64,000 bases of DNA from Phaeosaccion multiseriatum. Its lineage: Eukaryota; Protista; Ochrophyta, other classes. The position numbers and the translations under genes are program-made. Positions 35,718-64,000 of the stretch are shown here, one piece after another (position 1 is the first letter of the stretch; every line of letters begins with the position of its first letter). The stretch spans positions 2,480,001 through 2,544,000 of the forward strand of contig OZ218958.1 of assembly GCA_965112735.1 (NCBI GenBank). Direction: 5' to 3'. The notes beneath the pieces were generated by a model that was not told where the DNA came from, did not search any database, and was given only the letters and a program-made list of their open reading frames with translations.

Positions 35718-37835
35718 ATGACGTGGGCGCGCCGGAGCAGGATTGCCGGGAAGGTGCAGGCGTGGTATGACAAGAGAGTTGAGCTGGAGGCTTTGGGCTG
35801 GGGAAGCAGCAAGGAAGATCTCCTGCTCTTGCTCAAGGCCGTTCTCTGCACGGTCGATCTCAAGCAACTCAAGCAGATGGGGTATGGTCCGCTGCAATAC
35901 CTCGCCGAGGCTGAGAAGAGCAAGAAGACACGCTGTTCGGAGGTGAAGGGACCGAGAATGCTGGAGGGGGTGAAGCTGCTGGAGGAGTGCGGACTATGCG
36001 TTGACACCAGGCGAGATGGGGGTTCCTGGACGGCTCTGCACCAAGCTGCATGGAGGGGGCACTTTGACTTGGTGAAGGGGCTAGTGGAGGCGGGTGCGGA
36101 TGTCAACATCAAGCGTGATGCTGGAGCGACCCCTCTAGGCCTTGCTGCCTCCGCCGGCCACCCCATGATAGTGTGGTACTTGCTTAAGCATGGAGCCAAA
36201 TGGGAGGGGACCTACGCCTTGCACTGGGCAGCTCGGTTTGGGAGCCCTTCGAGTGTGAAGATGTTGCTGAAGGCAGGGGCCAATGTTTTCGAGAAGGATC
36301 AGGATGGGGACACGGCTGCCCAGAGTTGCTGCAGAGGGACTGACGAGCGGGGCTCGAAAGCAGGGCGGGCCGAGGCTCTGTCTATCTTGCTCAAGAAGGG
36401 CGCAGATGTGAAGGTGAAGGACGAAGATGGCGACACTCTCCTGCACCTCGCCGCGTTGTTCGGACACGAGCAGTGCATCCCCATTCTTGTGGGCAGAGGG
36501 CTGCAGGTCGATGCAAGGAGCAACAACTTGGACACGCCGCTCCACTTGGCCTCTTGGAATGGACATCTGGGATTTGTGAAGGAGGTCATTCGCCGCGGTG
36601 CCCCCCTTGACGCTGCCAATGAATACGGCCGCAGCCCTTTGCTGGAGGCTGCCGGTAGAGGCCACGTGAAGGTTGTGAGCGAGCTGATACGCGCCGATGC
36701 CTCTGTCAATGTCAAGGACAAGAATTCGATCACCGCACTGCATCTCGCGGCCGCCCTGGGCAGCATCAAGCTGGCCTACCTCCTGGTGGAGAGTGGAGCG
36801 GCGGTCGATGCCCTCACCGATGATGGTGAAAGTCCTTTGGTATCGTGCATGAGCCCTGCGGAAGGGACGGTAGCTCAGAATTTGAAGTATTGTCACACAT
36901 CACCAGGAGAAAAGGAGGCGCGCGAGAAGGTGGCTCGATTCCTGCTGAAGATGGGCGCTACCGTTGACGAGAAGGTGATGAAAGCGGCAGGGGAGGCAGG
37001 CTTCAGTGGTGTCATAACCTCTTTCATCAGGAAAGAACGGGAGGGGTGCAACGCTCTCACAGACAGACTTCACACCGTTTCGGAGCACTGCATGTCCGTT
37101 TTAGCTGGTGCTGAGGATGAGAAGGCTGACAGCCCAGTGCGGGTTAGGCTGGCGAATACGCGCAGTGGAGAGAAGGGCGAGAAGCAGTACGTCTTGAGCA
37201 TCCCTCTGATGGAGCGGCTGGCGGCGAAGGTCAGCGGGAGAGAGGAGGAGAGAGCGAAGATCTCCACAAGCCAAGCCTCAGCGGCAGGCATTCTTCCGAA
37301 TATGCTAGACCCGAGGAAGCACGGGTACAAGGGGGATGATGAAGGTGATGATGGTGAGGAGAAGGGGGAAGGGAAGGGCAAGAAGGAGATGAAGCGTGTA
37401 GAGCTGAAGTATGATGGCGTGGACTTCACGGAGGAGGGCTTTGAGGCTGTGGTGAAGTTCGTGACTACGGGCAGTGTGGAGGAGCTGCTGACGAGAAGGC
37501 CGCGAGAGAGAGGTACAGAGGGGGGCGCGAGCAGCAGCAGCAGCAGCGGCAGGCGAGGAGGAGGAGGGGGGGGGGCTGAAGGCACTGGCCGGGGCGGCAA
37601 GAAGAGGAAGCGTGTGAAGCTGTTCGACGACGTTCGAGCGAAGCAGGCTCTGCAGGCCGCGGAGTTCTTCTGTTTGGAAGGCATGGCGAGGGAGGTGAAG
37701 ACGCTGATGGGAGAGTACGGCTTCGAGCTGGAGCAGAACGAAACCGAGAAGGAGGAGGAAGGGCCGTCGCGGAAGAGAAAGGGCTGGACCCTGAGCACCA
37801 CCAAGGAAGACTTCAGCACCTGCATGCATGAGTGA
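35718..37835 (+). CDS. Ankyrin-repeat protein with C-terminal BTB/POZ-like domain, copy 1
   Basis: About 9 ankyrin repeats (TALHQAAWRGH, TPLHLASWNGH, TALHLAAALG). C-terminal FTEEGFEAVVKFVTTG...QALQAAEFFCLEGM fits the BTB helix pattern (inference). NLS-like KKRKR. Confidence 0.9.
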   Translation: MTWARRSRIAGKVQAWYDKRVELEALGWGSSKEDLLLLLKAVLCTVDLKQLKQMGYGPLQYLAEAEKSKKTRCSEVKGPRMLEGVKLLEECGLCVDTRRDGGSWTALHQAAWRGHFDLVKGLVEAGADVNIKRDAGATPLGLAASAGHPMIVWYLLKHGAKWEGTYALHWAARFGSPSSVKMLLKAGANVFEKDQDGDTAAQSCCRGTDERGSKAGRAEALSILLKKGADVKVKDEDGDTLLHLAALFGHEQCIPILVGRGLQVDARSNNLDTPLHLASWNGHLGFVKEVIRRGAPLDAANEYGRSPLLEAAGRGHVKVVSELIRADASVNVKDKNSITALHLAAALGSIKLAYLLVESGAAVDALTDDGESPLVSCMSPAEGTVAQNLKYCHTSPGEKEAREKVARFLLKMGATVDEKVMKAAGEAGFSGVITSFIRKEREGCNALTDRLHTVSEHCMSVLAGAEDEKADSPVRVRLANTRSGEKGEKQYVLSIPLMERLAAKVSGREEERAKISTSQASAAGILPNMLDPRKHGYKGDDEGDDGEEKGEGKGKKEMKRVELKYDGVDFTEEGFEAVVKFVTTGSVEELLTRRPRERGTEGGASSSSSSGRRGGGGGGAEGTGRGGKKRKRVKLFDDVRAKQALQAAEFFCLEGMAREVKTLMGEYGFELEQNETEKEEEGPSRKRKGWTLSTTKEDFSTCMHE

Positions 37836-38661: not shown

Positions 38662-40737
38662 ATGAGCGCGGAGCGGGAGAGGATTGCCGGGAAGGTGCAG
38701 GAGTGGTACGACAAGAGAGCTGAGCTGGAGGCTTCAGGCTGGGGAAGCTCCAAGGAGGACCTCCTGCTCTTGCTCAAGGCCGTTCTCTGCACCGTCGATG
38801 TCGAGGAGCTGAAGCAGAAGGGGTATGGTCCGCTGCACTACCTCGCGGATGCTGAGAAGAGCAAGGAGACACTGTGTTTGGAGGTGAAGGGACCGAGGAT
38901 GCTGGAGGGGGTGAAGCTGCTGGGGGAGTGCGGACTAAGCGTTGACACCAGGCGAGATGGGGGTTCCGGGACGGCTCTGCACCAAGCTGCATGGAGGGGG
39001 CACTTTGACTTGGTGAAGGGGCTAGTGGAGGCAGGTGCGGATGTCAACATCAAGTGTGATGCTGGAGCGACCCCTCTAGGCCTTGCTGCCTCCGCCGGCC
39101 ACCCCATGATAGTGTGGTACTTGCTTAAGCATGGAGCCAAATGGGAGGGGACCTACGCCTTGCACAGTGCGGCTCGGTTTGGGAGCCCTTCGAGTGTGAA
39201 GATGTTGCTGAAGGCAGGGGCCAATGTTTTCGAGAGGGAACCGGATGGGGACACGGCTGCCCAGAGTTGCTGCAGAGGGAGTGACGAGCAGGGCTCGAAA
39301 GCAGGGCGGGCCGAGGCTCTGTCTATCTTGCTCAAGAAGGGCGCAGATGTGAAGGTGAAGGACGAAGATGGCGACACTCTCCTGCACCTCGCCGCGTTGT
39401 TCGGACACGAGCAGTGCATCCCCATTCTTGTGGACAGAGGGCTGCAGGTCGATGCAAGGAACACCATCTTGGACACGCCGCTCCACTATGCCTCTTTGCA
39501 TGGACGCCTGGGATGTGTGAAGGAGCTCATTCACCGCGGTGCCCCCCTTGACGCTGTCGATGTATATGGTAGCATTTCCCTCACGTATGCGGCCCTCAGA
39601 GGCCACGAGGAGGTTGTGAGCGAGCTGATACGCGCCGATGCCTCTGTCGATGTCAAGGACAATAATTCGATCTCCCCACTGCATCTCGCGGCCGCCCTGG
39701 GCAGCATCAAGATGGCCTACCTCCTGGTGGAGGGTGGAGCGGCGGTCGATGCCCTCACTGATGATGGTGAAAGTCCTTTGGTATCGTGCATGCGCCCTGG
39801 AGAAGGGAAGATAGCTCAGACGTTGGAGAGTCTTCGAACATCACCAGGAGAGAAGGAGGCGCGCGAGAAGGTGGCTCGATTCCTGCTGAAGATGGGCGCT
39901 GCCGTTGACGAGAAGGTGATGAAAGCGGCAGGGGAGGCAGGCTTCAGTGGTGTCATTACGTCTTTCTTCAGGAAGGAACGGGAGGGGCGCAACGCTGTCA
40001 CAGACAGACTTCACACCGTTTCGGAGCACTGCATGTCCATGATGGCTGGTGCTGAGGATGAGAAGGCTGACAGCACAGTGCGGGTTAGGCTGGTGAATAC
40101 GCGCAGTGGAGAGAAGGGCGAGAAGCAGTACGTCTTGAGCATCCCTCTGATGGAGCGGCTGGCGGCGAGGGTCAGTGGGAGAGAGGAGGATAGAGCGAAG
40201 ATCTCCACAAGCCAAGCCTCAGCGGCAGGCATTCTTCCGAAAATGCTAGACCCGAGGAAGCACGGCTACAAGGGGGATGATGAAGGCGATGATGGTAAGG
40301 AGAAGGGGGAAGGGAAGGGCAAGAAGGAGATGAAGCGTGTAGAGCTGAAGTATGATGGCGTGGACTTCACGGAGGAGGGCTTTGAGGCTGTGGTGCAGTT
40401 CGTGACTACGGGCAGTGTGGAGGAGCTGCTGACGAGAAGGCCGCGAGAGAGAGGTACAGAGGGGGGCGCGAGCAGCAGCAGCAGCAGCGGCAGGCGAGGA
40501 GGAGGAGGGGGGGGGGCTGAAGGCACTGGCCGGGGCGGCAAGAAGAGGAAGCGTGTGAAGCTGTTCGACGACGTTCGAGCGAAGCAGGCTCTGCAGGCCG
40601 CGGAACTCTTCTGCTTGGAGGGCATGTCGAGGGAGGTGAAGACTCTAATGGGAGAGTACGGCTTCGAGCTGGAGCAGAACGAGACTGAGAAGGAGGAAGA
40701 AGGGCCGTCGCGGAAGAGAAGCAGGGCTGACCCCTGA
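38662..40737 (+). CDS. Ankyrin + BTB-like protein, copy 2
   Basis: 691 aa ORF, paralog of copy 1. Confidence 0.9.
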   Translation: MSAERERIAGKVQEWYDKRAELEASGWGSSKEDLLLLLKAVLCTVDVEELKQKGYGPLHYLADAEKSKETLCLEVKGPRMLEGVKLLGECGLSVDTRRDGGSGTALHQAAWRGHFDLVKGLVEAGADVNIKCDAGATPLGLAASAGHPMIVWYLLKHGAKWEGTYALHSAARFGSPSSVKMLLKAGANVFEREPDGDTAAQSCCRGSDEQGSKAGRAEALSILLKKGADVKVKDEDGDTLLHLAALFGHEQCIPILVDRGLQVDARNTILDTPLHYASLHGRLGCVKELIHRGAPLDAVDVYGSISLTYAALRGHEEVVSELIRADASVDVKDNNSISPLHLAAALGSIKMAYLLVEGGAAVDALTDDGESPLVSCMRPGEGKIAQTLESLRTSPGEKEAREKVARFLLKMGAAVDEKVMKAAGEAGFSGVITSFFRKEREGRNAVTDRLHTVSEHCMSMMAGAEDEKADSTVRVRLVNTRSGEKGEKQYVLSIPLMERLAARVSGREEDRAKISTSQASAAGILPKMLDPRKHGYKGDDEGDDGKEKGEGKGKKEMKRVELKYDGVDFTEEGFEAVVQFVTTGSVEELLTRRPRERGTEGGASSSSSSGRRGGGGGGAEGTGRGGKKRKRVKLFDDVRAKQALQAAELFCLEGMSREVKTLMGEYGFELEQNETEKEEEGPSRKRSRADP

Positions 40738-43700
40738 GCACCACCAAGTAAGACTTCAGCAGCTGCATGCATGAGTGAGCTCGCCTCGGTGGTGGGAGGA
40801 GGGAGAGTAGTGGAATGCCTTCCATCGCTCCTCTGAAGAAGCGCGAGAGGAGGTGTACCGTTGATTGGATTGCTTGGGTCCAAGGAAGAGGGGTCTTCCC
40901 TCCTGCCTCCGAGCCGCTCCCTCGTACCGTGTAGAGCATTAGATGCGCCGAAATGAATCGATCGAACCCCCTTCTGTGAGACACCCTATGTATGGTGTTC
41001 GGTATTGTTGATAAGGTCACTGAAAAAACCGTCCTCTCCCTTGGTCTAAGTGCCATGCCTTTCTTCCAATCCCTCTCTCTATTGCTCTGCGAACTGTCTC
41101 GGCTGCGAAGTGTCTCATCGCAGAGTGGGATTTCATAAAATTATGCATAAGTAACGTCTTGCTCATCGACGGAGGCACTCAACAGCACCACCTCACCTTA
41201 CCTGGCTTGACCTTGACATGCCCTGTCGTGCTTGTCCTTCCACAGAGGGGCGTGGTAACCCCCTGACCTGGTCTGACCTGCCCTGTGTGTTTCTGTACAG
41301 GGGCGTTGTGACAGCCCACTCAGTCTCTCGTGCCCCTTCGTCCCCCTTCCCTCCCACACGGAGCTCGCCCGTCCCCATCCCGCTCTCGCTCCGTTCAGTC
41401 GAGCTCCTGCCGCAACTGCTGCTGCTGCTGCTGCTCCTCCTCCTCCTCCTCCTCCTCCTCCTCCTCCTCCTCCTCCTCCTCCTCCTCATCCTCCTCCTCC
41501 CGCCTCCCTCCCTCCTCCTCCTCCTCCTCCTCTCCCTCCTCCTCCTCCTCCTCCGACTCCTCCTCCTCCTCCTCCTCCTCCTCCTCCTCATCCTCCTCCT
41601 CATCCTCCTCCTCATCCTCCTCCTCATCCTTCTCCCTCGTCCTCACGCCCCCACGGACTGAGCTCCGATCCCCACTCCGAGTATCCGGCCCCCATCATGC
41701 CCAGGCCGAGGGATGGCGCAGGAGCCGCTATCCAATCTCGAGGCACCCCAAGGAGGTCCAGGAGAGCGGTTTCCGAGCCCGGCATGTATGGGGAGGGTAC
41801 CCTGAGGGAGAGGGGTGGCAGTGGACGGGAAAGCCGTGAGAGGGGAGGGAGAGGACGATAAACCCTCGCGAGAGCACACAACCCCCCCCCCTTGCTGTCT
41901 CATGTCGTCATACATGCCCCCGTCTCGTTCCTGTTTGGCGTAGGATCGATGATGCGCTTGGCTGCTCTTCCTTCGTGCTTCTCACTATACTACTCGACCT
42001 CCCTCCCTTCTTCTAAGCAAACCCAGGAGGGGCGGACAGGTCGTTACTTTTAGGTAGGCATCGATGGCACTTAAAGGGCGTGATCTCTTCACTACTTCTC
42101 TGCCAAAGACCTCACTACTCTGCTCAAATACTCACGTTCTCTTCCCGTCTCCAGCCTCATGGGAGGCACGGGTACCTCTAGCGGCGCCTTCTTGAGCCCT
42201 TCGTTCAGCACATGGGGCACCTTGCTCAGCCCGTCCCTTTCGGTCGTCTCGTGATGAGCCGCGAGCATGCACTCACGTACAAGGGTCGACACAAGGATGC
42301 GCACCTGAGTAGTGAGGAGCATAGTGATTGGATGGCAGTGGATGGATGAGATGCATTGGATGGCAGTGGATGGATTGGGTATGTGGAGATACGACACAGA
42401 GGGAGGGGAGGATGGAGGAGGATGGGGGGAAACGCACGCACCTGCCGCCGCAGAAACCTGTCTCCCACTTTTGGAGGCGGGAGAGGGAGGGGGATGGCAG
42501 CCGATGGTGGGTGGGAGGGGGGGAGGGGTTGGAGAGAGCGGATGGCAGTGGACGGAGAAGGGGGTTGAGTTTGGGTTTGGGGTTGGGGCAATGAATCATG
42601 TTGAAGGAACATGCGTCGCCACCGCCAGGAAGGGAGTCAAGGAGAGAAGGGAGGGAGGGAGGGAGGGAGGGAGGGAGGGAGGGAGGGAGGGAGGGAGGGA
42701 GGGAGGGAGGGAGGGAGGGAGGCAGGGAGAAGAGAGAAGAGAGTGGGGGCCTTTTGTCACGCAATGAAGGGCAGAAAAGGGATGGAGGGCTCTCTCGAAA
42801 AGAAGCGCTAATATGGCACCAGACGGAAGGCACAGACAACCAAGGCGTGGTAGGAGCGGTTTGCATGTACGGGATATGGACCCATGGCACAGGCAGGCCC
42901 GACCATGTTAGCAGAGTAGGCAGTGTCGCCCACCCCTCCCTCCCCCCCCCCCTCCCCTCTCTTACCTAGCTGCACAGCCATGACAGGTACCTCCTCCCCG
43001 CTGCTCAGGCGCAGGGTCCTTACCCTTGCTCTCGCCTCCATAAGGCGGCACACATCTTCCTTGTGAGTGGTCTTGATCTTGCCGTGCATGAATGATCCCC
43101 AGCGATGGCCCTCGGCCCCCCCCTCCTCCTCGCCTCCACTCTCCTTGCCTCCTTGGATGCTCTGAAGCATGGCGTTGGCTCGCTTCACGCCTGTGATCCA
43201 AAGTGGCGCGGAGGAGAGGTGGACGAGAGTTAGAGTAGAGGTTTAGGGGCAGGGAGGTTACCATGACGCCAATTGAGCAAGACCGATACTCTGACGGGGG
43301 CAAATGAGAGAGTGGACAGGCCCGCCATTGTTGTCCAAATGGGTTTACGCTCGCGGAAGCTGAAACTTGGGCATCTGTCAGCCTACACCTTTGATCCTTC
43401 GATTCCTACTGTGCCGCCAATAGCTCAGGAGGAAAGCCTTCCGTTTCGCCTCCTCTCCATGCCTCCTGCTCTCTCACCTTTGCGTCTACTTGGCCCTACG
43501 CAGAACACGTGCGAGAGGCCCGCTACCAAAGCCCCATGGAGACAGCGGTGGTGCGGGAGTTGCCAGACGTGTTATACGGAGTGCATGATGACCTGACGGG
43601 CCCTGAGATCGGTAGATGGGACCAGCATCAGCATCTACACGTTGCGACATCAGCAAAGCCGGAGCGAGTACTCACCCTTTGAGGGAAAAGTCAAAGTGAC

Positions 43701-44374
43701 TGTGGTGTGACAGAGCAAGGGCGGCACATCAAAAGCTCCGCACAATCCTACGGAAGAGACACATGGCTGCCCCAGCTCTATCTCCGACGATGGAGTCGCG
43801 CTCGCCCATCCTCCTGACTGAGATGGTCATAGTTACCCTCGCTTTATCAGCTGCCAATTCTCGCCACGCAAACGCCGCGAGCACACTTTCAGCAGCCCAA
43901 CCCTTATTTCATAATGTGTTCTCTGAGACTGCCAAAGCGCTTCGTCTGCGATAGTCTGTATCTCTTGTATTCGTCTCCTCCCTCCAATGACGCGAGGGCG
44001 ACGATAATCCGACGACAAACAAAAGTAAAAAAAGGGAGCTGGAACTCCTTCGCCTGTGTAAAGGCCTACGACTCACAGGGCGTTAAATTCCCCCTCCCCC
44101 CTCTCGCACACTTTATACCGACACCGTTCCCCCCTCCCTCGTTCCGCTCGTGCTCCTCTCTATCTCCTTCTAAGGCTCTCAGTCTGTATTCGCTGCCTTT
44201 CTTCTTGTCGGCTTTCCCACCGACATCTGGCCCGATCTGTGGTGACTGCTCTACCAGACGCTTTCAGAGCTCGAAGCTCCGGGGTGGCCTCTATTTTCCT
44301 TCTTCCGCACCGTTCTTCTCTTGTCTGTACGGCAGAGTTGCTCGGGGTAGGGGAAGAGTGTGCTCTCGAGGAAG
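40738..44374. repeat. Array spacer type B (further copies at 46463-50701 and 58485-62089)
   Basis: Colinear high similarity among three spacers. Confidence 0.9.
41624..43760 (-). pseudogene. Putative spliced minus-strand gene or gene relic of unknown function in spacer B (copies about 47261-50090 and 59333-61435)
   Basis: Exon-like blocks (KRANAMLQSIQ..VMAVQL, VRILVSTLVRECML.., VPSPYMPGSETALLDLL..) bounded by CAG and GTAAG/GTGAG, with genome-typical intron repeats. Frames differ between copies (4 nt indel near 42148). I could not assemble one clean ORF. Confidence 0.4.
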
Positions 44375-46462
44375 ATGAGTGCAGAGCGGGAGAGGATTGC
44401 CGGGAAGGTGCAGGAGTGGTATGACAAAAGAGCTGAGCTGGAGGCTTCGGGCTGGGGAAGCACCAAGGAGGACCTCCTGCTCTTGCTCAAGGCCGTTCTC
44501 TGCACCGTCGATGTCGAGGAGCTGAAGCAGAAGGGGTATGGTCCGCTGCACTACCTTGCCGGTGCTGAGAAGAGCAAAGAGTCACGCTGCTCGGAGGTGA
44601 AGGGTTCGAGGATGCTGGAGGGGGTGAAGCTGCTGGGGGAGTGCGGACTGAACCTGGACGCCAAACTCAGCAGTGAGGAGGATGAAGTTGTGCCTGGCGA
44701 GATGGCTCTGCACCAAGCTGCACGCAGGGGGCACTTTGACTTGGTGAAGGGGCTAGTGGAGGCGGGTGCGGACGTCAACATCAAGTGTGATGCTGGAGCG
44801 ACCCCTCTAGGCCTTGCTGCTGAAGCCGGCCACCCCATGATAGTGTGGTACTTGCTTAAGCATGGAGCCAAATGGGAGGGGAGCTATGCCTTGCACTGGG
44901 CAGCTCGGTTTGGGAGCCCTTCGAGTGTGAAGATGTTGCTGGAGGCAGGGGCCAATGTTTTCGAGAAGAATCAGTACCATACGGCTGCCCAGAATTGCTG
45001 CATAGGGAGTGACGAGCAGGGCTCGAAAGCAGGGCGGGCCGAGGCTCTGTCTATCTTGCTCAGGAAGGGCGCAGATGTGAAGGTGAAGAACGAAATTGGC
45101 AGCACTCTCCTGCACCTCGCCGCGTACACCGGAAACGAGCAGTGCATCCCCATTCTTGTGGGCAGAGGGCTGCAGGTCGATGCAGTGGACAACATCTTGG
45201 ACACGCCGCTCCACTTGGCCTCTTGGAATGGACATCTGGGATGTGTGAAGGAGCTCATTCGTCGCGGTGCCCCCCTTGATGCTGTCCATGACCTTGGTAG
45301 CACTTCCCTCATGTTGGCTGTCGTCAGAGGCCACGTGAAGATTGTGAGGGAGCTGATACGCGCCGATGCCTCTGTCGATGTCAAAGACAAGAGTTCGATC
45401 ACCGCACTGCATCTCGCGGCCGCCCTGGGCAGCATCAAGATGGCCTACCTCCTGGTGGAGGGTGGAGCGGCGGTCGATGCCCTCACCGATGACGGTGAAA
45501 GTCCTTTGGTATCGTGCATGCGCCCTGGAGAAGGGAAGATAGCTCAGACTTTGCTTGAGCTTGGTACACCACCAGGAGAGAAGGAGGCGCGCGAGAAGGT
45601 GGCTCGATTCCTGCTGATGATGGGCGCTGCCGTTGACAAGGTGATGAAAGCGGCAGGGGAGGCAGGCTTCGGTGCTGTCATTAACTCTTTCATCAGGACA
45701 GAACAGGAGGGGCGCAACGCTGCCAGAGACAGACTTCACACCGTTTCTACCCACTACCTCTCCACGATGAACGGTGCTGAGGATGAGAAGGCTGACAGCA
45801 CAGTGCGGGTTAGGCTGGTGAATACGCGCAGTGGAGAGAAGGGCGAGAAGGAGTACGTCTTGAGCATCCCTCTGATGAAGCAGCTGGCGGCGAAGGTCAG
45901 TGGGAGAGAGGAGGAAAGAGTGAAGACCTCCTCAGGCCAAGCCTCAGCGGCAGGCATTCTTCCGAACATGCTGGACCCGAGGAAGCACGGCTACAAGGGG
46001 GTTGATGAAGATGATGATGGGGAGGAGAAGGGGGCAGGAAAGGGCAAGGAGATGAAGCGTATAGAGCTGAAGTATGATGGCGTGGACTTCACGGAGGAGG
46101 GCTTTGAGGCTGTGGTGCAGTGCGTGACCACGGGCAGTGTGGAGGAGCTGCTGACGAGAAGGCCGGGAGAGGGAGGTACAGAGGGGGGCACCACCAGCAG
46201 CAGCGGCAGCAGCGGTAGGCGAGGAGGAGGAGGGGGGGGAGCTGAAGGCACTGGCAGGGGCGGCAAGAAGAGGAAGCGTGTGAAGCTGTTCGACGACGTT
46301 CGAGCGAAGCAGGCTCTGCAGGCCGCGGAGTTCTTGTGCTTCGAGGGCATGGCGAGGGAGGTGAAGACACTGATGGGAGAGTACGGCTTTGAGCTGGAGC
46401 AGAACGAGACTGAGAAGGAAGAAGAAGGGCCATCGCGGAAGAGGAGCCGGGCTAACCCCTGA
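44375..46462 (+). CDS. Ankyrin + BTB-like protein, copy 3
   Basis: ORF 44360..46462; first ATG at 44375 (MSAERER). Confidence 0.9.
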   Translation: MSAERERIAGKVQEWYDKRAELEASGWGSTKEDLLLLLKAVLCTVDVEELKQKGYGPLHYLAGAEKSKESRCSEVKGSRMLEGVKLLGECGLNLDAKLSSEEDEVVPGEMALHQAARRGHFDLVKGLVEAGADVNIKCDAGATPLGLAAEAGHPMIVWYLLKHGAKWEGSYALHWAARFGSPSSVKMLLEAGANVFEKNQYHTAAQNCCIGSDEQGSKAGRAEALSILLRKGADVKVKNEIGSTLLHLAAYTGNEQCIPILVGRGLQVDAVDNILDTPLHLASWNGHLGCVKELIRRGAPLDAVHDLGSTSLMLAVVRGHVKIVRELIRADASVDVKDKSSITALHLAAALGSIKMAYLLVEGGAAVDALTDDGESPLVSCMRPGEGKIAQTLLELGTPPGEKEAREKVARFLLMMGAAVDKVMKAAGEAGFGAVINSFIRTEQEGRNAARDRLHTVSTHYLSTMNGAEDEKADSTVRVRLVNTRSGEKGEKEYVLSIPLMKQLAAKVSGREEERVKTSSGQASAAGILPNMLDPRKHGYKGVDEDDDGEEKGAGKGKEMKRIELKYDGVDFTEEGFEAVVQCVTTGSVEELLTRRPGEGGTEGGTTSSSGSSGRRGGGGGGAEGTGRGGKKRKRVKLFDDVRAKQALQAAEFLCFEGMAREVKTLMGEYGFELEQNETEKEEEGPSRKRSRANP

Positions 46463-49400: not shown

Positions 49401-49700
49401 CGGCCCCTCGTTGAGCGGAAAGAGATACACATACCGTCGCCATTTGGCGGAGAAGGTCGAGTGCAGCCTGTGACAGTTACGGACGCAAGCAGGGAGGGGA
49501 GGGAGCGGATGGTGTTGACATTAACACACAGGGAAGGAAGACTAAAGTTCGCTGTTGGGGAGTTCTCTCTCTATAGAGGGGCGTCTGTCTGTCTCAATGA
49601 TAGGCGGGTATCTAATGATAGGGGGATATCTGTCTGCATGAAAGAGGGGTGTGTAGAGTCTCACCCTCAGAGACCAACACCTCAACACTTATCGCCCACA

Positions 49701-49772: not shown

Positions 49773-50701
49773 TAGCTCAGGAGGAAAGCCTTCCGTTTCG
49801 CCTCCTCTCCATGCCTCCTGCTCTCTCTCCTTTGCGTCTACTTAGCCCTACGCAGAACACGTGCGAGAGGCCCGCTACCAAAGCCCCATGGAGACAGCGG
49901 TGGTGCGGGAGTTGCCAGACGTGTCATACGGAGTGCATGATGACCTGACGGGCCCTGAGATCGGTAGATAGGACCAGCAAATCAGCAAAACCGGAGTACT
50001 CACCCTTTGAGGGAAAAGTCAAAGTGACTGGCTGTGGTGTGACAGAGCAAGGGCGGCACATCAAAAGCTCCGCACAATCCTACGGAAGAGACACATGGCT
50101 GCCCCAGCTCTATCTCCGACGATGGAGTTCGCGCTCGCCCATCCTCCTGACTGAGATGGTCATAGTTACCCTCGCTTTATCAGCTGCCAATTCTCGCCAC
50201 GCAAACGCCGCGAGCACACTTTCAGCAGCCTAACCCTTATTCCACAATATGTTCTCTGAGACAGCCAACGCGCTTCGTCTGCGATCTCTTGTATTCGTCT
50301 CCTCCATGACGCGAGGGCGACGATAATCCGACGACAAACAAAAGTAAAAAAAGGGAGCTGGAACTCCTTCGCCTGTGTAAAGGCCTACGACTCACAGGGC
50401 GTTAAATTCCCCCTCCCCCCTCTCGCACACTTTATACCGACACCGTTCCCCCCTCCCTCTCCCCTCGTTTCGCTCGTGCTCCTCTCTATCTCCTCTTGAG
50501 GCTCTCAGTCTGTATTCGCTGCCTTTCTTCCTGTCGGCTTTCCCACCGCCATCTGGCCCGATCTGTGGTGACTGCTCTACCAGACGCTTTCAAAGCTCGA
50601 GGCTACCGGAGTGGCCTCTATTTTCCTTCTTCCGCACCGTTCTTCTCTTGTCTGTACGGCAGAGTTGCTCGGGGTAGGGGAAGAGTGTGCTCTCGAGGAA
50701 G

Positions 50702-53675: not shown

Positions 53676-55745
53676 ATGAGCGCGGAGCGGGAGAGGATTG
53701 CCGGGAAGGTGCAGGAGTGGTACGACAAGAGAGCTGAGCTGGAGGCTTCAGGCTGGGGAAGCACCAAGGAGGACCTCCTGCTCTTGCTCAAGGCCGTTCT
53801 CTGCACCGTCGATGTCGAGGAGCTGAAGCAGAAGGGGTATGGTCCGCTGCACTACCTCGCGGATGCTGAGAAGAGCAAGGAGACACTGTGTTTGGAGGTG
53901 AAGGGACCGAGGATGCTGGAGGGGGTGAAGCTGCTGGGGGAGTGCGGACTAAGCGTTGACACCAGGCGAGATGGGGGTTCCGGGACGGCTCTGCACCAAG
54001 CTGCATGGAGGGGGCACTTTGACTTGGTGAAGGGGCTAGTGGAGGCAGGTGCGGATGTCAACATCAAGTGTGATGCTGGAGCGACCCCTCTAGGCCTTGC
54101 TGCCTCCGCCGGCCACCCCATGATAGTGTGGTACTTGCTTAAGCATGGAGCCAAATGGGAGGGGACCTACGCCTTGCACAGTGCGGCTCGGTTTGGGAGC
54201 CCTTCGAGTGTGAAGATGTTGCTGAAGGCAGGGGCCAATGTTTTCGAGAGGGAACCGGATGGGGACACGGCTGCCCAGAGTTGCTGCAGAGGGAGTGACG
54301 AGCAGGGCTCGAAAGCAGGGCGGGCCGAGGCTCTGTCTATCTTGCTCAAGAAGGGCGCAGATGTGAAGGTGAAGGACGAAGATGGCGACACTCTCCTGCA
54401 CCTCGCCGCGTTGTTCGGACACGAGCAGTGCATCCCCATTCTTGTGGACAGAGGGCTGCAGGTCGATGCAAGAAGCAACCTCTTGGACACGCCGCTCCAC
54501 TTGGCCTCTTGGAATGGACATCTGGGATTTGTGAAGGAGCTCATTCGCCGCGGTGCCCCCCTTGACGCTGCCAATGAATACGGCCGCAGCCCTTTGCTGG
54601 AGGCTGCCGGTAGAGGCCACGAGGAGGTTGTGAGCGAGCTGATACGCGCCGATGCCTCTGTCAATGTCAAGGACAAGAATTCGATCACCGCACTGCATCT
54701 CGCGGCCGCCCTGGGCAGCATCAAGCTGGCCTACCTCCTGGTGGAGGGTGGAGCGGCGATCGATGCCCTCACCGATGATGGTGAAAGTCCTTTGGTATCG
54801 TGCATGAGCCCTGCGGAAGGGACGGTAGCTCAGAATTTGAAGTATTGTCACACATCACCAGGAGAAAAGGAGGCGCGCGAGAAGGTGGCTCGATTCCTGC
54901 TGAAGATGGGCGCTACCGTTGACGAGAAGGTGATGAAAGCGGCAGGGGAGGCAGGCTTCAGTGGTGTCATAACCTCTTTCATTAGGACAGCACGGGAGGG
55001 GTGCAACGCTCTCACAGACAGACTTCACACCGTTGCGGAGCACTGCATGTCCGTTTTAGCTGGTGCTGAGGATGAGAAGGCTGACAGCCCAGTGCGGGTT
55101 AGGCTGGCGAATACGCGCAGTGGAGAGAAGGGCGAGAAGCAGTACGTCTTGAGCATCCCTCTGATGGAGCGGCTGGCGGCGAAGGTCAGCGGGAGAGAGG
55201 AGGATAGAGCGAAGATCTCCACAAGCCAAGCCTCAGCGGCAGGCATTCTTCCGAATGTGCTAGACCCGAGGAAGCACGGCTACAAGGGGGATGATGAAGG
55301 CGATGATGGTAAGGAGAAGGGGGAAGGGAAGGGCAAGAAGGAGATGAAGAGTGTAGAGCTGAAGTATGATGGCGTGGACTTCACGGAGGAGGGCTTTGAG
55401 GCTGTGGTGCAGTTCGTGACTACGGGCAGTGTGGAGGAGCTGCTGACGAGAAGGCCGCGAGAGAGAGGTACAGAGGGGGGCGCGAGCAGCAGCAGCAGCA
55501 GCGGCAGGCGAGGAGGAGGAGGGGGGGGAGCTGAAGGCACTGGCCGGGGCGGCAAGAAGAGGAAGCGTGTGAAGCTGTTCGACGACGTTCGAGCGAAGCA
55601 GGCTCTGCAGGCCGCGGAGTTCTTCTGTTTGGAAGGCATGGCGAGGGAGGTGAAGACGCTGATGGGAGAGTACGGCTTTGAGCTGGAGCAGAACGAGACT
55701 GAGAAAGAAGTGCCATCGCAGAAGAGAAGCAGAGCTGACCCCTGA
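53676..55745 (+). CDS. Ankyrin + BTB-like protein, copy 5 (chimeric)
   Basis: 689 aa ORF; N-terminal part matches copy 2, central repeats match copy 1. Confidence 0.9.
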   Translation: MSAERERIAGKVQEWYDKRAELEASGWGSTKEDLLLLLKAVLCTVDVEELKQKGYGPLHYLADAEKSKETLCLEVKGPRMLEGVKLLGECGLSVDTRRDGGSGTALHQAAWRGHFDLVKGLVEAGADVNIKCDAGATPLGLAASAGHPMIVWYLLKHGAKWEGTYALHSAARFGSPSSVKMLLKAGANVFEREPDGDTAAQSCCRGSDEQGSKAGRAEALSILLKKGADVKVKDEDGDTLLHLAALFGHEQCIPILVDRGLQVDARSNLLDTPLHLASWNGHLGFVKELIRRGAPLDAANEYGRSPLLEAAGRGHEEVVSELIRADASVNVKDKNSITALHLAAALGSIKLAYLLVEGGAAIDALTDDGESPLVSCMSPAEGTVAQNLKYCHTSPGEKEAREKVARFLLKMGATVDEKVMKAAGEAGFSGVITSFIRTAREGCNALTDRLHTVAEHCMSVLAGAEDEKADSPVRVRLANTRSGEKGEKQYVLSIPLMERLAAKVSGREEDRAKISTSQASAAGILPNVLDPRKHGYKGDDEGDDGKEKGEGKGKKEMKSVELKYDGVDFTEEGFEAVVQFVTTGSVEELLTRRPRERGTEGGASSSSSSGRRGGGGGGAEGTGRGGKKRKRVKLFDDVRAKQALQAAEFFCLEGMAREVKTLMGEYGFELEQNETEKEVPSQKRSRADP

Positions 55746-56422: not shown

Positions 56423-58484
56423 ATGACGGTGGCCCGCCGGAGCAGGATTGCCGGGAAGGTGCAGGCGTGGTACGACAAGAGAGTTGAGCTGGAGGCTTCG
56501 GGCTGGGGAAGCAGCAAGGAGGACCTCCTGCTCTTGCTCAAGGCCGTTCTCTGCACCGTCGATATCGAGGAGCTGAAGCAGAAGGGGTATGGTCCGCTGC
56601 AATACCTCGCCGAGGCTGAGAAGAGCAAGAAGACACGCTGTTCGGAGGTGAAGGGACCGAGAATGCTGGAGGGGGTGAAGCTGCTGGAGGAGTGCGGACT
56701 ATGCGTTGACACCAGGCGAGATGGGGGTTCCAGGACGGCTCTGCACCAAGCTGTATGGAGGGGGCACTTTGACTTGGTGAAGGGGCTAGTGGAGGCGGGT
56801 GTGGATGTCAACATCAAGTGTACCGATACTGAACGGACACCTCTACGCCTTGCTGCCTCCGCCGGCCACCCCATGATAGTGTGGTACTTGCTTAAGCATG
56901 GAGCCAAATGGGAGGGGACCTGCTGGGAGCCCTTCAAGTGTGAAGATGCTGCTGAAGGCAGGGGCCAATGTATTCGAGAAGGATCTGGATGGATATACGG
57001 CTGCCCAGAATTGCTGCATAGGGAGTGACGAGCAGGGCTCGAAAGCAGGGCGGGCCGAGGCTCTGTCTATCTTGCTCAGGAAGGGCGCAGATGTGAAGGT
57101 GAAGAACGAAATTGGCAGCACTCTCCTGCACCTCGCCGCGTACACCGGAAACGAGCAGTGCATCCCCATTCTTGTGGGCAGAGGGCTGCAGGCCGATGCA
57201 AGGAGCAACGAGTTGGTCACGCCGCTCCACTTCGCCTCTTGGAGAGGACAACTGGGATGTGTGAAGGAGCTCATTCGCCGCGGTACCCCCCTTGACGCTG
57301 TCACTGCACGTGGTAGCACTTCCCTCTTGTTTGCTGTCGTCAGAGGCCACGTGAAGGTTGTGAGCGAGCTGATACGCGCCGATGCCTCTGTCGATGTCAA
57401 AGACAAGAATTCGACCACCGCACTGCATCTCGCGGCCGCCCTGGGCAGCATCAAGATGGCCTACCTCCTGGTGGAGGCTGGAGCGGCGGTCGATGCCCTT
57501 ACCGATGAAGGTGAAAGTCCTTTGGTATCGTGCATACGCCCTGGAGAAGGGAAGATAGCTCAGACGTTGGAGAGACTTCGAACATCACCAGGAGCGAAGG
57601 AGGCGCGCGAGAAGGTGGCTCGATTCCTGCTGAAGATGGGCACTGCCGTTGACGAGAAGGTTATGAAAGCGGCGGGGGAGGCAGGCTTCAGTGGTGTCAT
57701 TTCCTCTTTCTTCAGGAAAGAACGGGAGGGGCGCAACGCTGCCACAGACAGACTTCACACTGTTTCTGAGCACTACTCGTCCATGATGGCTGGTGCTGAG
57801 GATGAGAAGGCTGACAGCACAGTGCGGGTTATGCTGGTGAATACGCGCAGTGGAGAGAAGGGCGAGAAGCAGTACGGTTTGAGCATCCCTCTGATGGAGC
57901 GGCTGGCGGCGAGGGTCAGCGGGAGAGAGGAGGAAAGAGTGAAGACCTCCTCAGGCCAAGCCTCAGCGGCAGGCATTCTTCCGAATATGCTTGACCCGAG
58001 GAAGCACGGCTACAAGGGGGATGATGAAGATGATGATGGGGAGAAGAAGGGGGCAGGGAAAGGCAAGAAGGAGATGAAGCGTGTAGAGCTGAAGTATGAT
58101 GGCGCGGACTTTACCGAGGAGGGCTTTGAGGCTGTGGTGCAGTTCGTGACGACGGGCAGTGTGGAGGAGCTGCTGACGAGAAGGACGGGAGAGGGAGGTA
58201 CAGAGGGGGGCGCGAGCAGCAGCAGCAGCAGCAGCAGGCGAGGAGGAGGAGGGGGGGGAGGTGAAGGCACTTGCCGGGGGGGGAAGAAGAGGAAGCGTGT
58301 GAAGCTGTTCGACGACGTTCGAGCCAAGCAGGCTCTGCAGGCCGCGGAGTTCTTCTGTTTGGAGGGCATGTCGAGGGAGGTGAAGACAATGATGGGAGAG
58401 TACGGCTTTGAGCTAGAGCAGAGCGAGACCGAGAGAGAGGGGGAAGAAGGGCCATCGCGGAAGAGGAGCCGAGCTGACCCCTGA
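56423..58484 (+). pseudogene. Ankyrin + BTB-like copy 6, frameshifted
   Basis: Split into ORFs 56411..57028 and 56898..58484. Only 4 nt (TGCT) lie between ACC and GGG AGC at 56921 versus 27 nt in other copies, i.e. a 23 nt deletion. Confidence 0.85.
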
Positions 58485-59238
58485 GCATCGCCAACCCAAG
58501 GCTTGAGAAGCTGCACGTGCGAGTGAGGCTGCTCTGCCTGTGGTGGGAGGCGAGAGAGAAGTAGTGGAACGCCTTCCATCGCTCCTCTGAAGAAGCGCGA
58601 GAGGAGGTGTACTGTTGATTGGATTGGGTCCAAGGAGGGGGGTCTTCCCTCCTGCCTCCGAGCCGCTCCCTCGTACCGTGTAGAGCATTAAGTGCGTCCA
58701 AATGAATCCATCGAACCCCCTTCTGTGAGATCGACCCTATGTATGGTGTTCGGCATTGTTGATACGGTCACTGACACTGAAAACCGTCTGTGCTCTCCCT
58801 TGGTCCAACTGCCATGCATTTCTTCCAATCCCTCTCTATTACTCTGCGAACTGTCTCATCGCAGAGTGGGATTTCATAAACGTATGCATAAGTAAGGTCT
58901 TGCTCATCGACGGAGGCACTCAACAGCACCACCTCACCTTACCTGGCTTGACCTTGACATGCCCTGTCTTGCTTGTCCTTCCACAGAGGGGCGTGGTAAC
59001 CCCCTGACCTGGTCTGACCTGCCCTGTGTGTCTCTCTGTACAGGGGCGTTGTGACAGCCCACTCAGTCTCTCGTGCCCCTTCGTCCCCCTTCCCTCCCAC
59101 ACGGAGCTCGCCCGTCCCCATCCCGCTCTCGCTCCGTTCAGTCGAGCTCCTGCTGCAGCCGCTGCTGCTGCTGCTCCTCCTCCTCATCATCATCATCATC
59201 ATCACCATCATCACCAACATCATCATCATCATCATCAT

Positions 59239-59273
<35 letters not shown>

Positions 59274-62089
59274 CCCCCTCCTCTTCCTCCTTCTCCTCCT
59301 CATCCTCCTCCCGCCTCTCCTCCTCCTCCTCCTCATCCTCCTCCCTCGTCCTCACGCCCCCACGGACTGAGCTCCGATCCCCACTCCGAGTATCCGGCCC
59401 CCATCATGCCCAGGCCGAGGGATGGCGCAGGAGCCGCTATCCAATCTCGAGGCACCCCAAGGAGGTCCAGGAGAGCGGTTTCCGAGCCCGGCATGTATGG
59501 GGAGGGTACCCTGAGGGAGAGGGGTGGCAGTGGACGGGAAAGCCGTGAGAGGGGAGGGAGAGGACGATAAACCCTCGCGAGAGCACACAACCCCCCCCCC
59601 TTGCTGTCTCATGTCGTCATACATGCCCCCGTCTCGTTCCTGTTTGGCGTAGGATCGATGATGCGCTTGGCTGCTCTTCCTTCGTGCTTCTCACTATACT
59701 ACTCGACCTCCCTCCCTTGTTCTAAGCAAACCCAGGAGGGGCGGACAGGTCGTTACTTTTAGGTAGGCATCGATGGCACTTAAAGGGCGTGATCTCTTCA
59801 CTACTTCTCTGCCAAAGACCTCACTACTCTGTTCAAATACTCACGTTCTCTTCCCGTCGCTGTCCAGCCTCATGGGAGGCACGGGTACCTCTAGCGGCGC
59901 CTTCTTGAGCCCTTCGTTCAGCACATGGGGCACCTTGCTCAGCCCGTCCCTTTCGGTCGTCTCGTGATGAGCCGCGAGCATGCACTCACGTACAAGGGTC
60001 GACACAAGGATGCGCACCTGGGTAGTGAGGAGCATAGTGATTGGATGGCAGTGGATGGATGAGATGCATTGGATGGCAGTGGATGGATTGGGTATGTGGA
60101 GATACGACACAGAGGGAGGGGAGGATGGAGGAGGATGGGGGGAAACGCACGCACCTGCCGCCGCAGAAACCTGTCTCCCACTTTTGGAGGCGGGAGAGGG
60201 AGGGGGATGGCAGCCGATGGTGGGTGGGAGGGGGGGAGGGGTTGGAGAGGGCGGATGGCAGTGGACGGAGAAGGGGGTTGAGTTTGGGTTTGGGGTTGGG
60301 GCAATGAATCATGTTGAAGGAACATGGGTCGCCACCGCCAGGAAGGGAGTCAAGGAGAGAAGGGAGGGAGGGAGGGGGGGAGGGAGGGAGGGAGGGAGGG
60401 AGGGAGGCAGGGAGAAGAGAGAAGGGAGTGGGGGCCTTTTGTCACGCAATGAAGGGCAGAAAAGGGATGGAGGGCTCTCTCGAAAAGAATCGCGAATATG
60501 GCACCAGACGGAAGGCACAGACAACGAAGGCGTGGTAAGAGCGGTTTGTATGTACGGGGTATGGACCCATGGCACAGGCAGGCCCGACCATGTTAGCAGA
60601 GTAGGCAGTGTCGCCCACCCCTCCTTCCCCCCCCCCTCCCCTCTCTTACCTAGCTCCACAGCCATGACAGGTACCTCCTCCCCGCTGCTCAGGCGCAGGG
60701 TCCTTACCCTTGCTCTCGCCTCCATAAGGCGGCACACATCTTCCTTGTGAGTGGTCTTGATCTTGCCGTGCATGAATGATCCCCAGCGATGGCCCTCGCC
60801 CCCCCCCTCCTCCTCGCCTCCCCTCTCCTTGCCTCCTTGGATGCTCTGAAGCATGGCGTTGGCTCGCTTCACGCCTGTGATCAAAAGTGGCGCGGAGGAG
60901 AGGTGGACGAGAGTTAGAGTAGAGGTTGAGGGGCAGGGAGGTTACCATGACGCCAATTGAGCAAGACCGATACTCTGACGGGGGCAAATGAGAGAGTGGA
61001 CAGGCCCGCCATTGTTGTCCAAATGGGTTTACGCTCGCGGAAGCTGAAACTTGGGCATCTGTCAGCCTACACCTTTGATCCTTCGATTCCTGCTGTGCCG
61101 CCAATAGCTCAGGAGGAAAGCCTTCCGTTTCGCCTCCTCTCCATGCCTCCTGCTCTCTCACCTTGCTTTGCGTCTACTTAGCCCTACGCAGAACACGTGC
61201 GAGAGGCCCGCTACCAAAGCCCCATGGAGACAGCGGTGGTGCGGGAGTTGCCAGACGTGTCATACGGAGTGCATGATGACCTGACGGGCCCTGAGAACGG
61301 TAGACAAGGCCAGCATCAGCATCTACACGTTGCTACATCAGCAAAGCCGGAGTACTCACCCTTTGAGGGAAAAGTCAAAGTGACTGTGGCGTGACAGAGC
61401 AAGGACGGCACATCAAAAGCTCCGCACAATCCTACGGAGGAGACACATGGCTGCCCCAGCTCTATGTCCGACGATGGAGTCGCGCTCGCCCATCCTCCTG
61501 ACTGAGATGGTCAAAATTGAAGAAAACGCACCCTCGCTTTATCAGCTGCCAATTCTCTCCACACGAATGCCGCAAGCACACTCTCAGCAGCTCAACCCCT
61601 ATTCCACAATGTGTTCTCTGAGACTGCCAAAGCGCTTCGTCTGCGATAGCCTGTATCTCTTGTATTCGTCTCCTCCCTCCAATGAGGCGCGAAGGCGACG
61701 ACGATAATCCGACGACGACAAACAAAAGTAAAAAAAGCGAGCTGGAACTCTTTCTTTCCCCTTCAGGTCTACGACTCACAGGGCGTTAAATTCCCCTTTC
61801 GCACGCATTATACCGACACCTCCCCCCCTCCCTCTCCCCCTCCCTCTCCCCCTCGTTCCGCTCGTGCTCCTCTCTATCTCCTTCTGAGGATCTCAGTCTG
61901 TATTCGCTGCCTTTCTTCCTATCGCTCGGCTTTCCCACCGCCATCTGTGCCCGACTGCTGAAGCAGACGCTTTCGTAGCTCGAGGCTACCGGAGTGGCAT
62001 CTAGTTTCCCTCTTCCTTACCCTTCTTGCTGCTGTCTGTACGACAGAGTCGCTCGGGGTAGGGGAAGAGCGAGTGTGCTCTCGAGGAAG

Positions 62090-64000
62090 ATGAGTGCAGA
62101 GCGGGAGAGGATTGCCGGGAAGGTGCAGGAGTGGTATGACAAAAGAGCTGAGCTGGAGGCTTCGGGCTGGGGAAGCACCAAGGAGGACCTCCTGCTCTTG
62201 CTCAAGGCCGTTCTCTGCACCGTCGATGTCGAGGAGCTGAAGCAGAAGGGGTATGGTCCGCTGCACTACCTTGCCGGTGCTGAGAAGAGCAAAGAGTCAC
62301 GCTGCTCGGAGGTGAAGGGTTCGAGGATGCTGGAGGGGGTGAAGCTGCTGGGGGAGTGCGGACTGAACCTGGACGCCAAACTCAGCAGTGAGGAGGATGA
62401 AGTTGTGCCTGGCGAGATGGCTCTGCACCAAGCTGCACGCAGGGGGCACTTTGACTTGGTGAAGGGGCTAGTGGAGGCGGGTGCGGACGTCAACATCGAG
62501 TCGGACGCTGGACGGACACCTCTGCGCCTTGCTGCTCACGCCGGCCACCCCATGATAGTGTGGTACTTGCTTAAGCATGGAGCCAAATGGGAGGGGACCT
62601 ACGCCTTGCGCGATGCGGCTCGGGCTGGGAGCCCTTCGAGTGTGAAGATGTTGCTGAAGGCAGGGGCCAATGTATTCGAGAAGGATCTGGATGGAGATAC
62701 GGCTGCCCAGAAGTGCTGCATAGGGAGTGACGAGCAGGGCTCGAAAGCAGGGCGGGCCGAGGCTCTGTCTATCTTGCTCAAGAAGGGCGCAGATGTGAAG
62801 GTGAAGGACAAAGTTGGCTACACTCTCCTGCTCTTCGCCGCGTACACCGGAAACGAGCAGTGCATCCCCATTCTTGTGGGCAGAGGGCTGCAGGTCGATG
62901 CAGTGGACAACGATTTGTGCACGCCGCTCCACTGGGCCTCTTTATATGGACAAGTGGGATGTGTGAAGGAGCTCATTCGCCGCGGTGCCCCCCTTGATGC
63001 TGTGAATGTATATGGTATCACTTCCCTCTTGTTTGCTGTCGTCAGAGGCCACGTAAAGGTTGTGAGCGAGCTGATGCACGCCGATGCCTCTGTTGATGTC
63101 AAGGACAAGAATTCGGTCACCCCACTGCATGTCGCGGCCGCCCTGGGCAGCATCAAGATGGCCTACCTCCTGGTGGAGGGTGGAGCGGCGGTCGATGCCC
63201 TCACCGATGATGGTGAAAGTCCTTTGGTATCGTGCATGCGCCCTGGAGAAGGGAAGATAGCTCGGACGTTGGAGAGGTTTCGACCATCACCAGGAGAAAA
63301 GGAGGCGCGCGAGAAGGTGGCTCGATTCCTGCTGAAGATGGGCACTGCCGTTGACGAGAAGGTTATGAAAGCGGCAGGGGAGGCAGGCTTCAGTGGTGTC
63401 ATTTCCTCTTTCTTCAGGAAAGAACGGGAGGGGCGCAACGCTGCCACTGACAGACTTCACACCGTTTCTACCCACTATCTCTCCACGATGAGCGGTGCTG
63501 AGGATGAGAAGGCTGACAGCACAGTGCGGGTTAGGCTGGTGAACACGCGCAGTGGAGAGAAGGGCGAGAAGCAGTACGTCTTGAATGTCCCTCTGATGGA
63601 GCGGCTGGCGGCGAGGGTCAGTGGGAGAGAGGAGGAGAGAGCGAAGATCTCCACAGCAGGCCAAGCCTCAGCGGCAGGCATTCTTCCGAATATGCTTGAC
63701 CCGAGGAAGCACGGCTACAAGGGGGATGACGAAGATGACAATGGGGAGAAGGGGGCAGGGAAGGGCAAGAAGGAGCTGAAGTATGATGGCGTGGACTTCA
63801 CCGAGGGGGGCTTTGAGGCTGTGGTGCAGTTCGTGACGACGGGCAGTGTGGAGGAGCTGCTGACGAGAAGGCCGCGAGAGGGAGGTACAGAGGGGGGCGC
63901 GAGCAGCAACAGCAGCAGCAGCAGGCGAGGAGAAGGGGGGAAAGCTGAAGGCACTGGCCGGGGCGGCAAGAAGAGGAAGCGTGTGAAACTTTTCGACGAC
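62090..64000 (+). CDS. Ankyrin + BTB-like protein, copy 7 (truncated by window end)
   Basis: ATG AGT GCA GAG at 62090 is in frame with ...KLFDD at 64000; missing from the ORF track because no stop is in the window. Confidence 0.9.
   Translation, partial: MSAERERIAGKVQEWYDKRAELEASGWGSTKEDLLLLLKAVLCTVDVEELKQKGYGPLHYLAGAEKSKESRCSEVKGSRMLEGVKLLGECGLNLDAKLSSEEDEVVPGEMALHQAARRGHFDLVKGLVEAGADVNIESDAGRTPLRLAAHAGHPMIVWYLLKHGAKWEGTYALRDAARAGSPSSVKMLLKAGANVFEKDLDGDTAAQKCCIGSDEQGSKAGRAEALSILLKKGADVKVKDKVGYTLLLFAAYTGNEQCIPILVGRGLQVDAVDNDLCTPLHWASLYGQVGCVKELIRRGAPLDAVNVYGITSLLFAVVRGHVKVVSELMHADASVDVKDKNSVTPLHVAAALGSIKMAYLLVEGGAAVDALTDDGESPLVSCMRPGEGKIARTLERFRPSPGEKEAREKVARFLLKMGTAVDEKVMKAAGEAGFSGVISSFFRKEREGRNAATDRLHTVSTHYLSTMSGAEDEKADSTVRVRLVNTRSGEKGEKQYVLNVPLMERLAARVSGREEERAKISTAGQASAAGILPNMLDPRKHGYKGDDEDDNGEKGAGKGKKELKYDGVDFTEGGFEAVVQFVTTGSVEELLTRRPREGGTEGGASSNSSSSRRGEGGKAEGTGRGGKKRKRVKLFDD

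Follow-up and report, generated by a model that had tools for sequence, protein, structure and literature searches.

The stretch analysed here, a 64,000-nucleotide window of contig OZ218958.1 of Phaeosaccion multiseriatum (positions 2,480,001 to 2,544,000 of the forward strand), carries a tandem array of ankyrin-repeat genes from window position 35718 to its end. Using one copy as a tblastn query, seven paralogues were located, all on the + strand, which agrees with an initial annotation that had placed such an array at this site. Five of the seven copies are intact open reading frames (ORFs) of 689-715 amino acids, and each copy comprises about 9 to 11 ankyrin repeats followed by a C-terminal domain. 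The copies are numbered c1 to c7 from left to right, and all positions are those of the window.

35718-37835, + strand: c1, intact ORF, 705 amino acids from the ATG
38662-40737, + strand: c2, intact ORF, 691 amino acids; its haplotype in repeats 6-7 is unique to it
44375-46462, + strand: c3, intact ORF, 695 amino acids
50702-52849, + strand: c4, intact ORF, 715 amino acids
53676-55745, + strand: c5, intact ORF, 689 amino acids; recombinant
56423-58484, + strand: c6, broken; a 528-amino-acid ORF is left from the ATG at 56898
62090-64000, + strand: c7, cut by the window end; open throughout, 636 codons seen; its surface variant is the most divergent of all
40738-44374, no strand: long spacer, non-coding and of low complexity; it has related counterparts at 46463-50701 and 58485-62089, and all belong to the duplicated units

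The lesion in c6 is a net 23-nt deletion at 56921-56924, which shifted the frame and removed the core of ankyrin repeat 3. Self-comparison revealed nested segmental duplications with 88-96% DNA identity: the c1+c2 unit matches the c4+c5 unit at 96%, and the stretch from c2 across the spacer to c3 matches that from c6 through c7 at 91%. The spacers are 3.6-4.2 kb long, and a second gene family within them was ruled out, as every ORF that they contain is low-complexity. The C-terminal tails of c1 (37779-37835) and c4 (52793-52849) are 19 residues longer, with …KGWTLSTTKEDFSTCMHE replacing …SRADP; this alternative tail marks the junction of one duplication unit.

Ankyrin repeats were the sole Pfam match in the encoded proteins (E 1e-49); by profile, Ank_2 (E 6e-49) and Ank (E 2e-46) matched over seven stretches. 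Nine repeats could be placed by register, and the alignment showed their number to be identical across all copies; the N-terminal 102 residues are also ankyrin-like by ESM features (score 0.97). Repeats 5-8 of c2 have only 9-13 of 33 residues in common with one another. Variation between copies peaks in repeats 5-7, referred to below as the hot region.

38968-39804, + strand: ankyrin repeats 1-9 of c2 (Pfam Ank_2 E 6e-49, repeat register; alignment columns 116-400)
36027-36863, 44699-45532, 51026-51877, 53982-54818, 56732-57548 and 62414-63250, + strand: ankyrin repeats 1-9 of the other copies (columns 116-400)
39361-39657, + strand: hot region, repeats 5-7 of c2; five distinct haplotypes among the copies; block omega (non-synonymous to synonymous rate ratio) 1.7-5.3
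36420-36716, 45089-45385, 51434-51730, 54375-54671, 57105-57401 and 62807-63103, + strand: hot region of the other copies

A sliding nearest-neighbour scan showed the copies to be a clear mosaic. Up to about column 275, c5 does not differ from c2, and beyond that point it resembles c1/c4; it is therefore a recombinant. Copy c1 is identical with c4 from column 251 on, whereas c3 is identical with c7 at the N-terminus and with c6 over columns 226-275. Over columns 276-325, c2, c3, c6 and c7 each differ from their nearest neighbour at 19-21 of 150 nt, and nearest-neighbour differences per 150 nt were 18-21 in the hot region versus 0-8 in the flanks. The likeness of the flanks is partly due to gene conversion. 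The summed word depth in DNA sequencing runs was about three-fold lower over 39455-39651, the unique hot region of c2, than over its flanks, which fits a single-copy hot region between flanks common to several copies.

The differences are not spread evenly over the solenoid. Variable amino-acid columns made up 34 of the 48 at the six positions that are randomised in designed ankyrin repeat proteins (DARPins) but only 53 of the 221 at other ankyrin positions (odds ratio 7.7, p = 2e-9), and the observed count was matched in 78 of 100000 draws of random six-position sets. Most changes per repeat fell at positions 3, 5, 10, 1, 2 and 13 in DARPin numbering, i.e., 1, 3, 8, 32, 33 and 11 in the numbering of PMC8415598, all of which lie on the concave face; positions 1, 3, 8 and 33 are among the proposed determinants of ankyrin specificity (PMC8415598). 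At column 288, five different residues occur among the seven copies. The initial annotation had pointed to variability at the target-contacting DARPin positions and had quoted variant peptides in its support, and these are indeed present: those of repeat 6 at columns 285-299 (in c1/c4, c2, c3, c6 and c7), those of repeat 7 at columns 318-332, and HWAARF, HSAARF, HRAARY and RDAARA of repeat 3 at columns 182-187. Its description of the scaffold as almost invariant went slightly too far, as about a quarter of scaffold columns vary.

Selection was assessed on the seven paralogues of this one genome, using a codon-likelihood program written for this analysis (GY94-type, F3x4) in which each alignment block received its own tree and branch lengths, to allow for recombination; in the codon models, branch lengths were fixed from M0. 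Pairwise pN/pS was 0.3-0.9 in the N-terminus, 0.7-1.6 in repeats 1-4, 0.8-4.0 in repeats 5-7, 0.7-2.0 in repeats 8-9, and 0.3-0.65 in the tail. In repeat 5 (columns 251-283), as many as 12 non-synonymous differences occurred with no synonymous one, and synonymous divergence in the hot region was not above that of the N-terminus or the tail. Over seven blocks from N-terminus to tail, M0 omega was 0.32, 0.84, 2.22, 1.69, 0.99, 0.51 and 0.24; in the tail overall it ranged from 0.06 to 0.65. M2a was preferred over M1a with a likelihood-ratio test (LRT) statistic of 57 (p = 4e-13) and an omega of 5.7 at 8.8% of sites, and with one of 50.2 when the alignment was divided into fourteen 50-codon blocks, each with its own tree. 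In the fourteen-block fit, 12 sites exceeded a posterior of 0.8. Nine of them are at concave ankyrin positions, no other ankyrin position is included, and the remaining three belong to loops ahead of repeat 1 and inside repeat 9. With a partition set beforehand, DARPin positions had an omega of 2.23, the scaffold one of 0.45 and the sequence outside the repeats one of 0.63 (LRT against omega = 1 of 25.7, p = 4e-7), and across fits the value at the pre-set positions was 2.2-2.5. The signal was kept when the hot block was left out and was absent from repeats 8-9, where omega is about 1. The initial annotation had expected omega above 1 at concave-face codons of a diversifying family, and our codon models bear out both the expectation and the diversification, with a conserved tail beside it. 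We consider it likely that the concave ankyrin face is under positive selection; purifying selection held the N-terminus and tail while the copies diverged.

The constant C-terminal domain is interrupted by two low-complexity inserts.

40069-40647, + strand: BTB-fold domain of c2, divergent and carrying two inserts of low complexity, assigned by homology to the relatives P0121-P0123, of which one yielded a model that matches BTB
37128-37706, 45794-46372, 52142-52720, 55083-55661, 57813-58391 and 63515 onwards, + strand: BTB-fold domain of the other copies
40540-40554, + strand: KKRKR basic cluster of c2, a candidate nuclear localisation signal inside the second insert

In our own reading of the alignment there are six apparent between-copy indels in the tail inserts, all multiples of three; the inserts are therefore taken to be coding, and introns at these places were ruled out. 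The KKRKR motif named in the initial annotation is present in all seven copies, and P0121 has a basic cluster at the corresponding place.

An exhaustive profile search with the tail against 1.84 billion representative proteins returned three relatives, P0121, P0122 and P0123 (E 2.9e-14, 8e-7 and 9.7e-4), all of them from a single metagenome assembly (ENA ERZ1426853) and all with ankyrin repeats followed by the homologous tail. P0121 is collinear with c2, with 33% identity over 611 residues. A word-index protein search found generic ankyrin proteins only with the full protein, nothing with the tail, and only the query itself with a homologue tail; pattern scans of IMG/VR and JGI metagenomes gave no relatives. 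The P0121 contig (11.8 kb) has ten closely packed genes, including Pox_VLTF3 and glutaredoxin, and that of P0122 (10.3 kb) has fifteen small genes, including a RING finger; judged by gene density and this one hallmark family, both contigs are probably giant-virus genomes or inserts.

The P0122 tail, whose inserts are short, was modelled from an eight-sequence alignment with a predicted local distance difference test score (pLDDT) of 75 and a predicted template modelling score of 0.73. The top 50 PDB matches and the top 30 Swiss-Prot matches of this model in Foldseek were all BTB domains, and against the BTB domain of KEAP1 it gave a VIA Z of 10.0 over 103-106 residues at 2.6-3.1 Å. The model has the BTB core order of strand-strand-helix-helix-strand-helix-helix-helix and aligns with the window tail. 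The c2 tail itself agrees with BTB in the order of its secondary-structure elements, and ESM features put BTB clusters on top for it (score 0.89) and likewise for a homologue tail (0.93), which we treat as leads only. Because the homologue model matches BTB domains only, the family's tail is, on the strength of that model, a divergent BTB fold, to which the window copies are linked by homology. The candidate cullin-contacting motif, h-X-(D/E), placed by secondary-structure order rather than by residue-level structural alignment, reads M-L-D in 7/7 copies and in P0123.

The array adjoins a minus-strand dynein heavy chain gene (window 5600-32300), intron-rich with many short exons, whose exon ORFs match MT, AAA_8, AAA_7, Dynein_AAA_lid and DHC_N2; because of this neighbour, the array is placed in the host chromosome. 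The GC content of the array (0.59-0.60) and its GC at third codon positions (GC3, 0.70) are the same as those of the surroundings and of a dynein exon. No viral hallmark gene was found anywhere in the 64-kb window, and Rfam gave no match within it. Immediately upstream of the array, at 32621-34708 on the + strand, is an uninterrupted 695-amino-acid ORF of very low complexity (poly-S, poly-G, EQ and RGE repeats) that has one hydrophobic stretch and no meaningful Pfam match. The dynein region also contains long arrays of short-period tandem repeats (8442-8928, 13184-13780, 19385-19762, 22326-22731 and 22855-23322); those at 19.4 kb and 22.3 kb are 94-99% alike and are therefore one satellite in two introns.

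With confidence a little better than even, we favour the explanation that these genes encode alternative binders that all feed a single output, probably a cullin ligase, in a conflict to which giant viruses are probably a party. The family would be young and lineage-restricted, made of uninterrupted genes on a host chromosome that grew by nested segmental duplication, its members kept alike through gene conversion. Each protein combines a variable module, the solenoid of about 9 to 11 repeats in which positive selection has driven the concave face of repeats 1-7 and two adjoining loops apart between copies, with a constant one, the C-terminal divergent BTB-fold domain held by purifying selection. 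The ankyrin faces may capture different, fast-changing partner proteins, and the BTB domain may oligomerise and link these to an effector common to all copies, for which a ubiquitin ligase of the Cullin-3 type is the most plausible candidate. A parasite is the probable source of the partner proteins, with giant viruses suspected first, given that such relatives as were found sit on giant-virus-like contigs. The initial annotation, which had inferred nuclear ubiquitin-ligase adaptors and a possible innate defence against viral or parasite proteins, is supported in part; the gene-conversion mosaic, the broken copy and the giant-virus-like setting of the relatives were not noted in it. This binder-repertoire reading is favoured because the MATH-BTB and F-box families show the same pattern, a binder that changes fast on a constant BTB domain in a tandem family with gain and loss of members, and because the selection on the concave face resembles that in the ankyrin repeats of fungal NOD-like receptors (PMC4986451).

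A number of observations weigh against it. The BTB profile (PF00651) was not matched by the window tail at E values up to 10 or by the relatives at up to 1, PDB sequence searches with either tail profile gave nothing meaningful, and the AlphaFold2 model of the c2 tail reached a pLDDT of only 33; the BTB domain of the initial annotation is thus upheld as a fold, through the homologue, and not as a Pfam domain or a model of the window proteins themselves. The candidate h-X-(D/E) motif becomes L-L-Q in P0121 and M-L-R in P0122. Neither BACK nor a 3-box follows the BTB domain, since the homologue model has no helix past residue 135 of 146 and the window proteins stop about 35 low-complexity residues beyond the last helix. 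KCTD-type Cullin-3 adaptors also lack both elements, so their absence is compatible with cullin binding. One copy, c6, is broken, and in the four sequencing runs that contain the locus, genes and spacers are covered alike, i.e., coverage is genomic-DNA-like and lends no support for expression. As to selection, only about five independent haplotypes exist per region among the seven paralogues, recombination within blocks could still inflate the LRTs, and a tree-free conservative count at the six strict positions gave an N:S of 54:9 (omega about 1.8, one-sided p = 0.06), turning significant only when positions 1 and 10 were added (77:10, p = 0.006).

Some of these points would suit a tail that is not a ligase adaptor at all, but a plain oligomerisation or regulatory module as in NPR1/BOP or the BTB transcription factors, with the family being nuclear regulators or scaffolds that differ in their partners. 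Many BTB domains do not bind Cullin-3, and the missing BACK or 3-box, the variation of the motif among relatives and the basic clusters, which suggest nuclear location, all go in the same direction. We nonetheless regard this as unlikely, although a serious contender: M-L-D is invariant in the window copies, and a fast binder with a constant BTB domain in a tandem birth-and-death family is the pattern described for ligase adaptors in PMC4334554.

With relatives found only on giant-virus-like contigs, host defence and a virus-derived family are both in play. The family could have arrived with an integrated giant virus and been amplified in the host, its ankyrin face having served the virus by redirecting host ligases to host factors in the manner of poxvirus ankyrin and BTB-kelch proteins, so that the present copies are relics or have been domesticated. 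That the three relatives come from one metagenome, two of them on compact contigs and one of these with Pox_VLTF3, would fit such an origin, as would ORFs that are uninterrupted though they lie beside an intron-rich gene, and the broken c6. We consider it improbable, as a viral source is at odds with the lack of hallmark genes, the non-coding spacers, and a GC and GC3 equal to those of the flanks and the dynein exon; moreover, the N-terminus and tail stayed under purifying selection during copy divergence, the nested duplications carry host-like low-complexity spacers that point to amplification in place, and the viral relatives are only 33-38% identical and are without the N-terminal 85 residues.

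That there was no adaptive diversification, the surface positions being simply the least constrained, with gene conversion erasing other differences and an omega above 1 produced artificially, in a very small sample, by recombination, biased conversion or multi-nucleotide changes, is very improbable: ankyrin repeats in general vary most at their surface positions (PMC8415598), the mosaic is strong, the strict count is borderline and repeats 8-9 have an omega of about 1, but relaxation predicts an omega near 1 and not 2.2-6, and it sits poorly with the 12 to 0 excess in repeat 5, the five residues at column 288, an LRT of still 50 under 14 independent block trees, unremarkable synonymous divergence in the hot region, and a signal that is present outside the hot block too.

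The binder-repertoire reading has a bolder extension that we think doubtful, namely that the alga and giant viruses share one hypervariable ankyrin-BTB recognition system, either an intracellular host immune repertoire tagging viral proteins, of which the viral copies were captured as decoys or counter-weapons, or the reverse. If true, this would amount to a DARPin library of natural origin, encoded in the germline of a protist and wired to a ligase. Few intracellular recognition systems against giant viruses have been described in protists, and the ankyrin-BTB family would be a testable candidate for one, parallel to the nematode and plant adaptors of the MATH-BTB and F-box type. Because of the viral relatives, it becomes a concrete question which way the genes moved and which way the conflict runs. 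The natural surface variants could also serve, as they stand, as a small panel with which to ask what partners an ankyrin face can be adapted to.

Several known systems resemble the array in part. Ankyrin repeats and BTB are also joined in one chain in animal ABTB1, ABTB2 and BTBD11 (ankyrin then BTB) and in plant NPR1/BOP (BTB then ankyrin), but those are single conserved regulators, whereas the array is diversifying; a sequence relationship was likewise not detected, as the exhaustive tail profile search matched only the three metagenomic proteins. As in DARPins, the most variable sites (2, 3, 5, 13 and 14, plus 1 and 10, in DARPin numbering) are largely the library-randomised positions on a stable, consensus-like scaffold. 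The array differs from DARPins in being natural, with few variants (five haplotypes seen), in that position 33 is only mildly variable, in having extra variable loops flanking the solenoid, and in a scaffold that is not the consensus repeat.

Poxvirus ankyrin/PRANC (F-box-like) and BTB-kelch host-range proteins and the ankyrin and BTB families of giant viruses are likewise multigene families that link a repeat binder to a cullin-ligase docking module (PMC5753266; bioRxiv 10.1101/2023.12.02.569716), and relatives of the array sit on giant-virus-like contigs. However, the array is without kelch and lies in a host chromosome with host-like composition; Pfam gave no PRANC or F-box match in the window proteins, the tail or the relatives, and we found no description of an ankyrin-to-BTB order for these viral families in the same two sources. 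In fungal NOD-like receptors, ankyrin, TPR and WD repeats are hypervariable, the concave face of the ankyrin repeats (inner helix and beta-hairpin) bears the positive selection and the polymorphism, and recombination and concerted evolution shuffle the variants (PMC4986451). The array shares the concave-face selection and the shuffling by recombination. In the fungal receptors, however, the number of repeats varies and those of one protein are over 85% alike, whereas here they share 9-13 of 33 residues, their number is constant, and the diversity lies between paralogues; the array proteins also have no NACHT or NB-ARC, their output domain being a BTB fold.

The closest parallel in pattern is with the MATH-BTB and F-box families of nematodes and plants, in which positive selection acts in the substrate-binding and not the cullin-binding domain (Thomas 2006, as cited in PMC4334554). 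According to the same source, these families are tandem and turn over fast, and a role in intracellular defence, by tagging foreign proteins, has been suggested for them. The array is like them in its omega of 2.2-6 in the binder against 0.06-0.65 in the tail, its nested duplications and its one broken copy. It is unlike MATH-BTB in that the binder is an N-terminal ankyrin solenoid rather than MATH, and that the BTB domain is C-terminal, invisible to Pfam, split by two low-complexity inserts and without BACK or a 3-box, its cullin docking being putative. The array thus belongs with the adaptively evolving ligase-adaptor or repeat-receptor families, which are a known kind.

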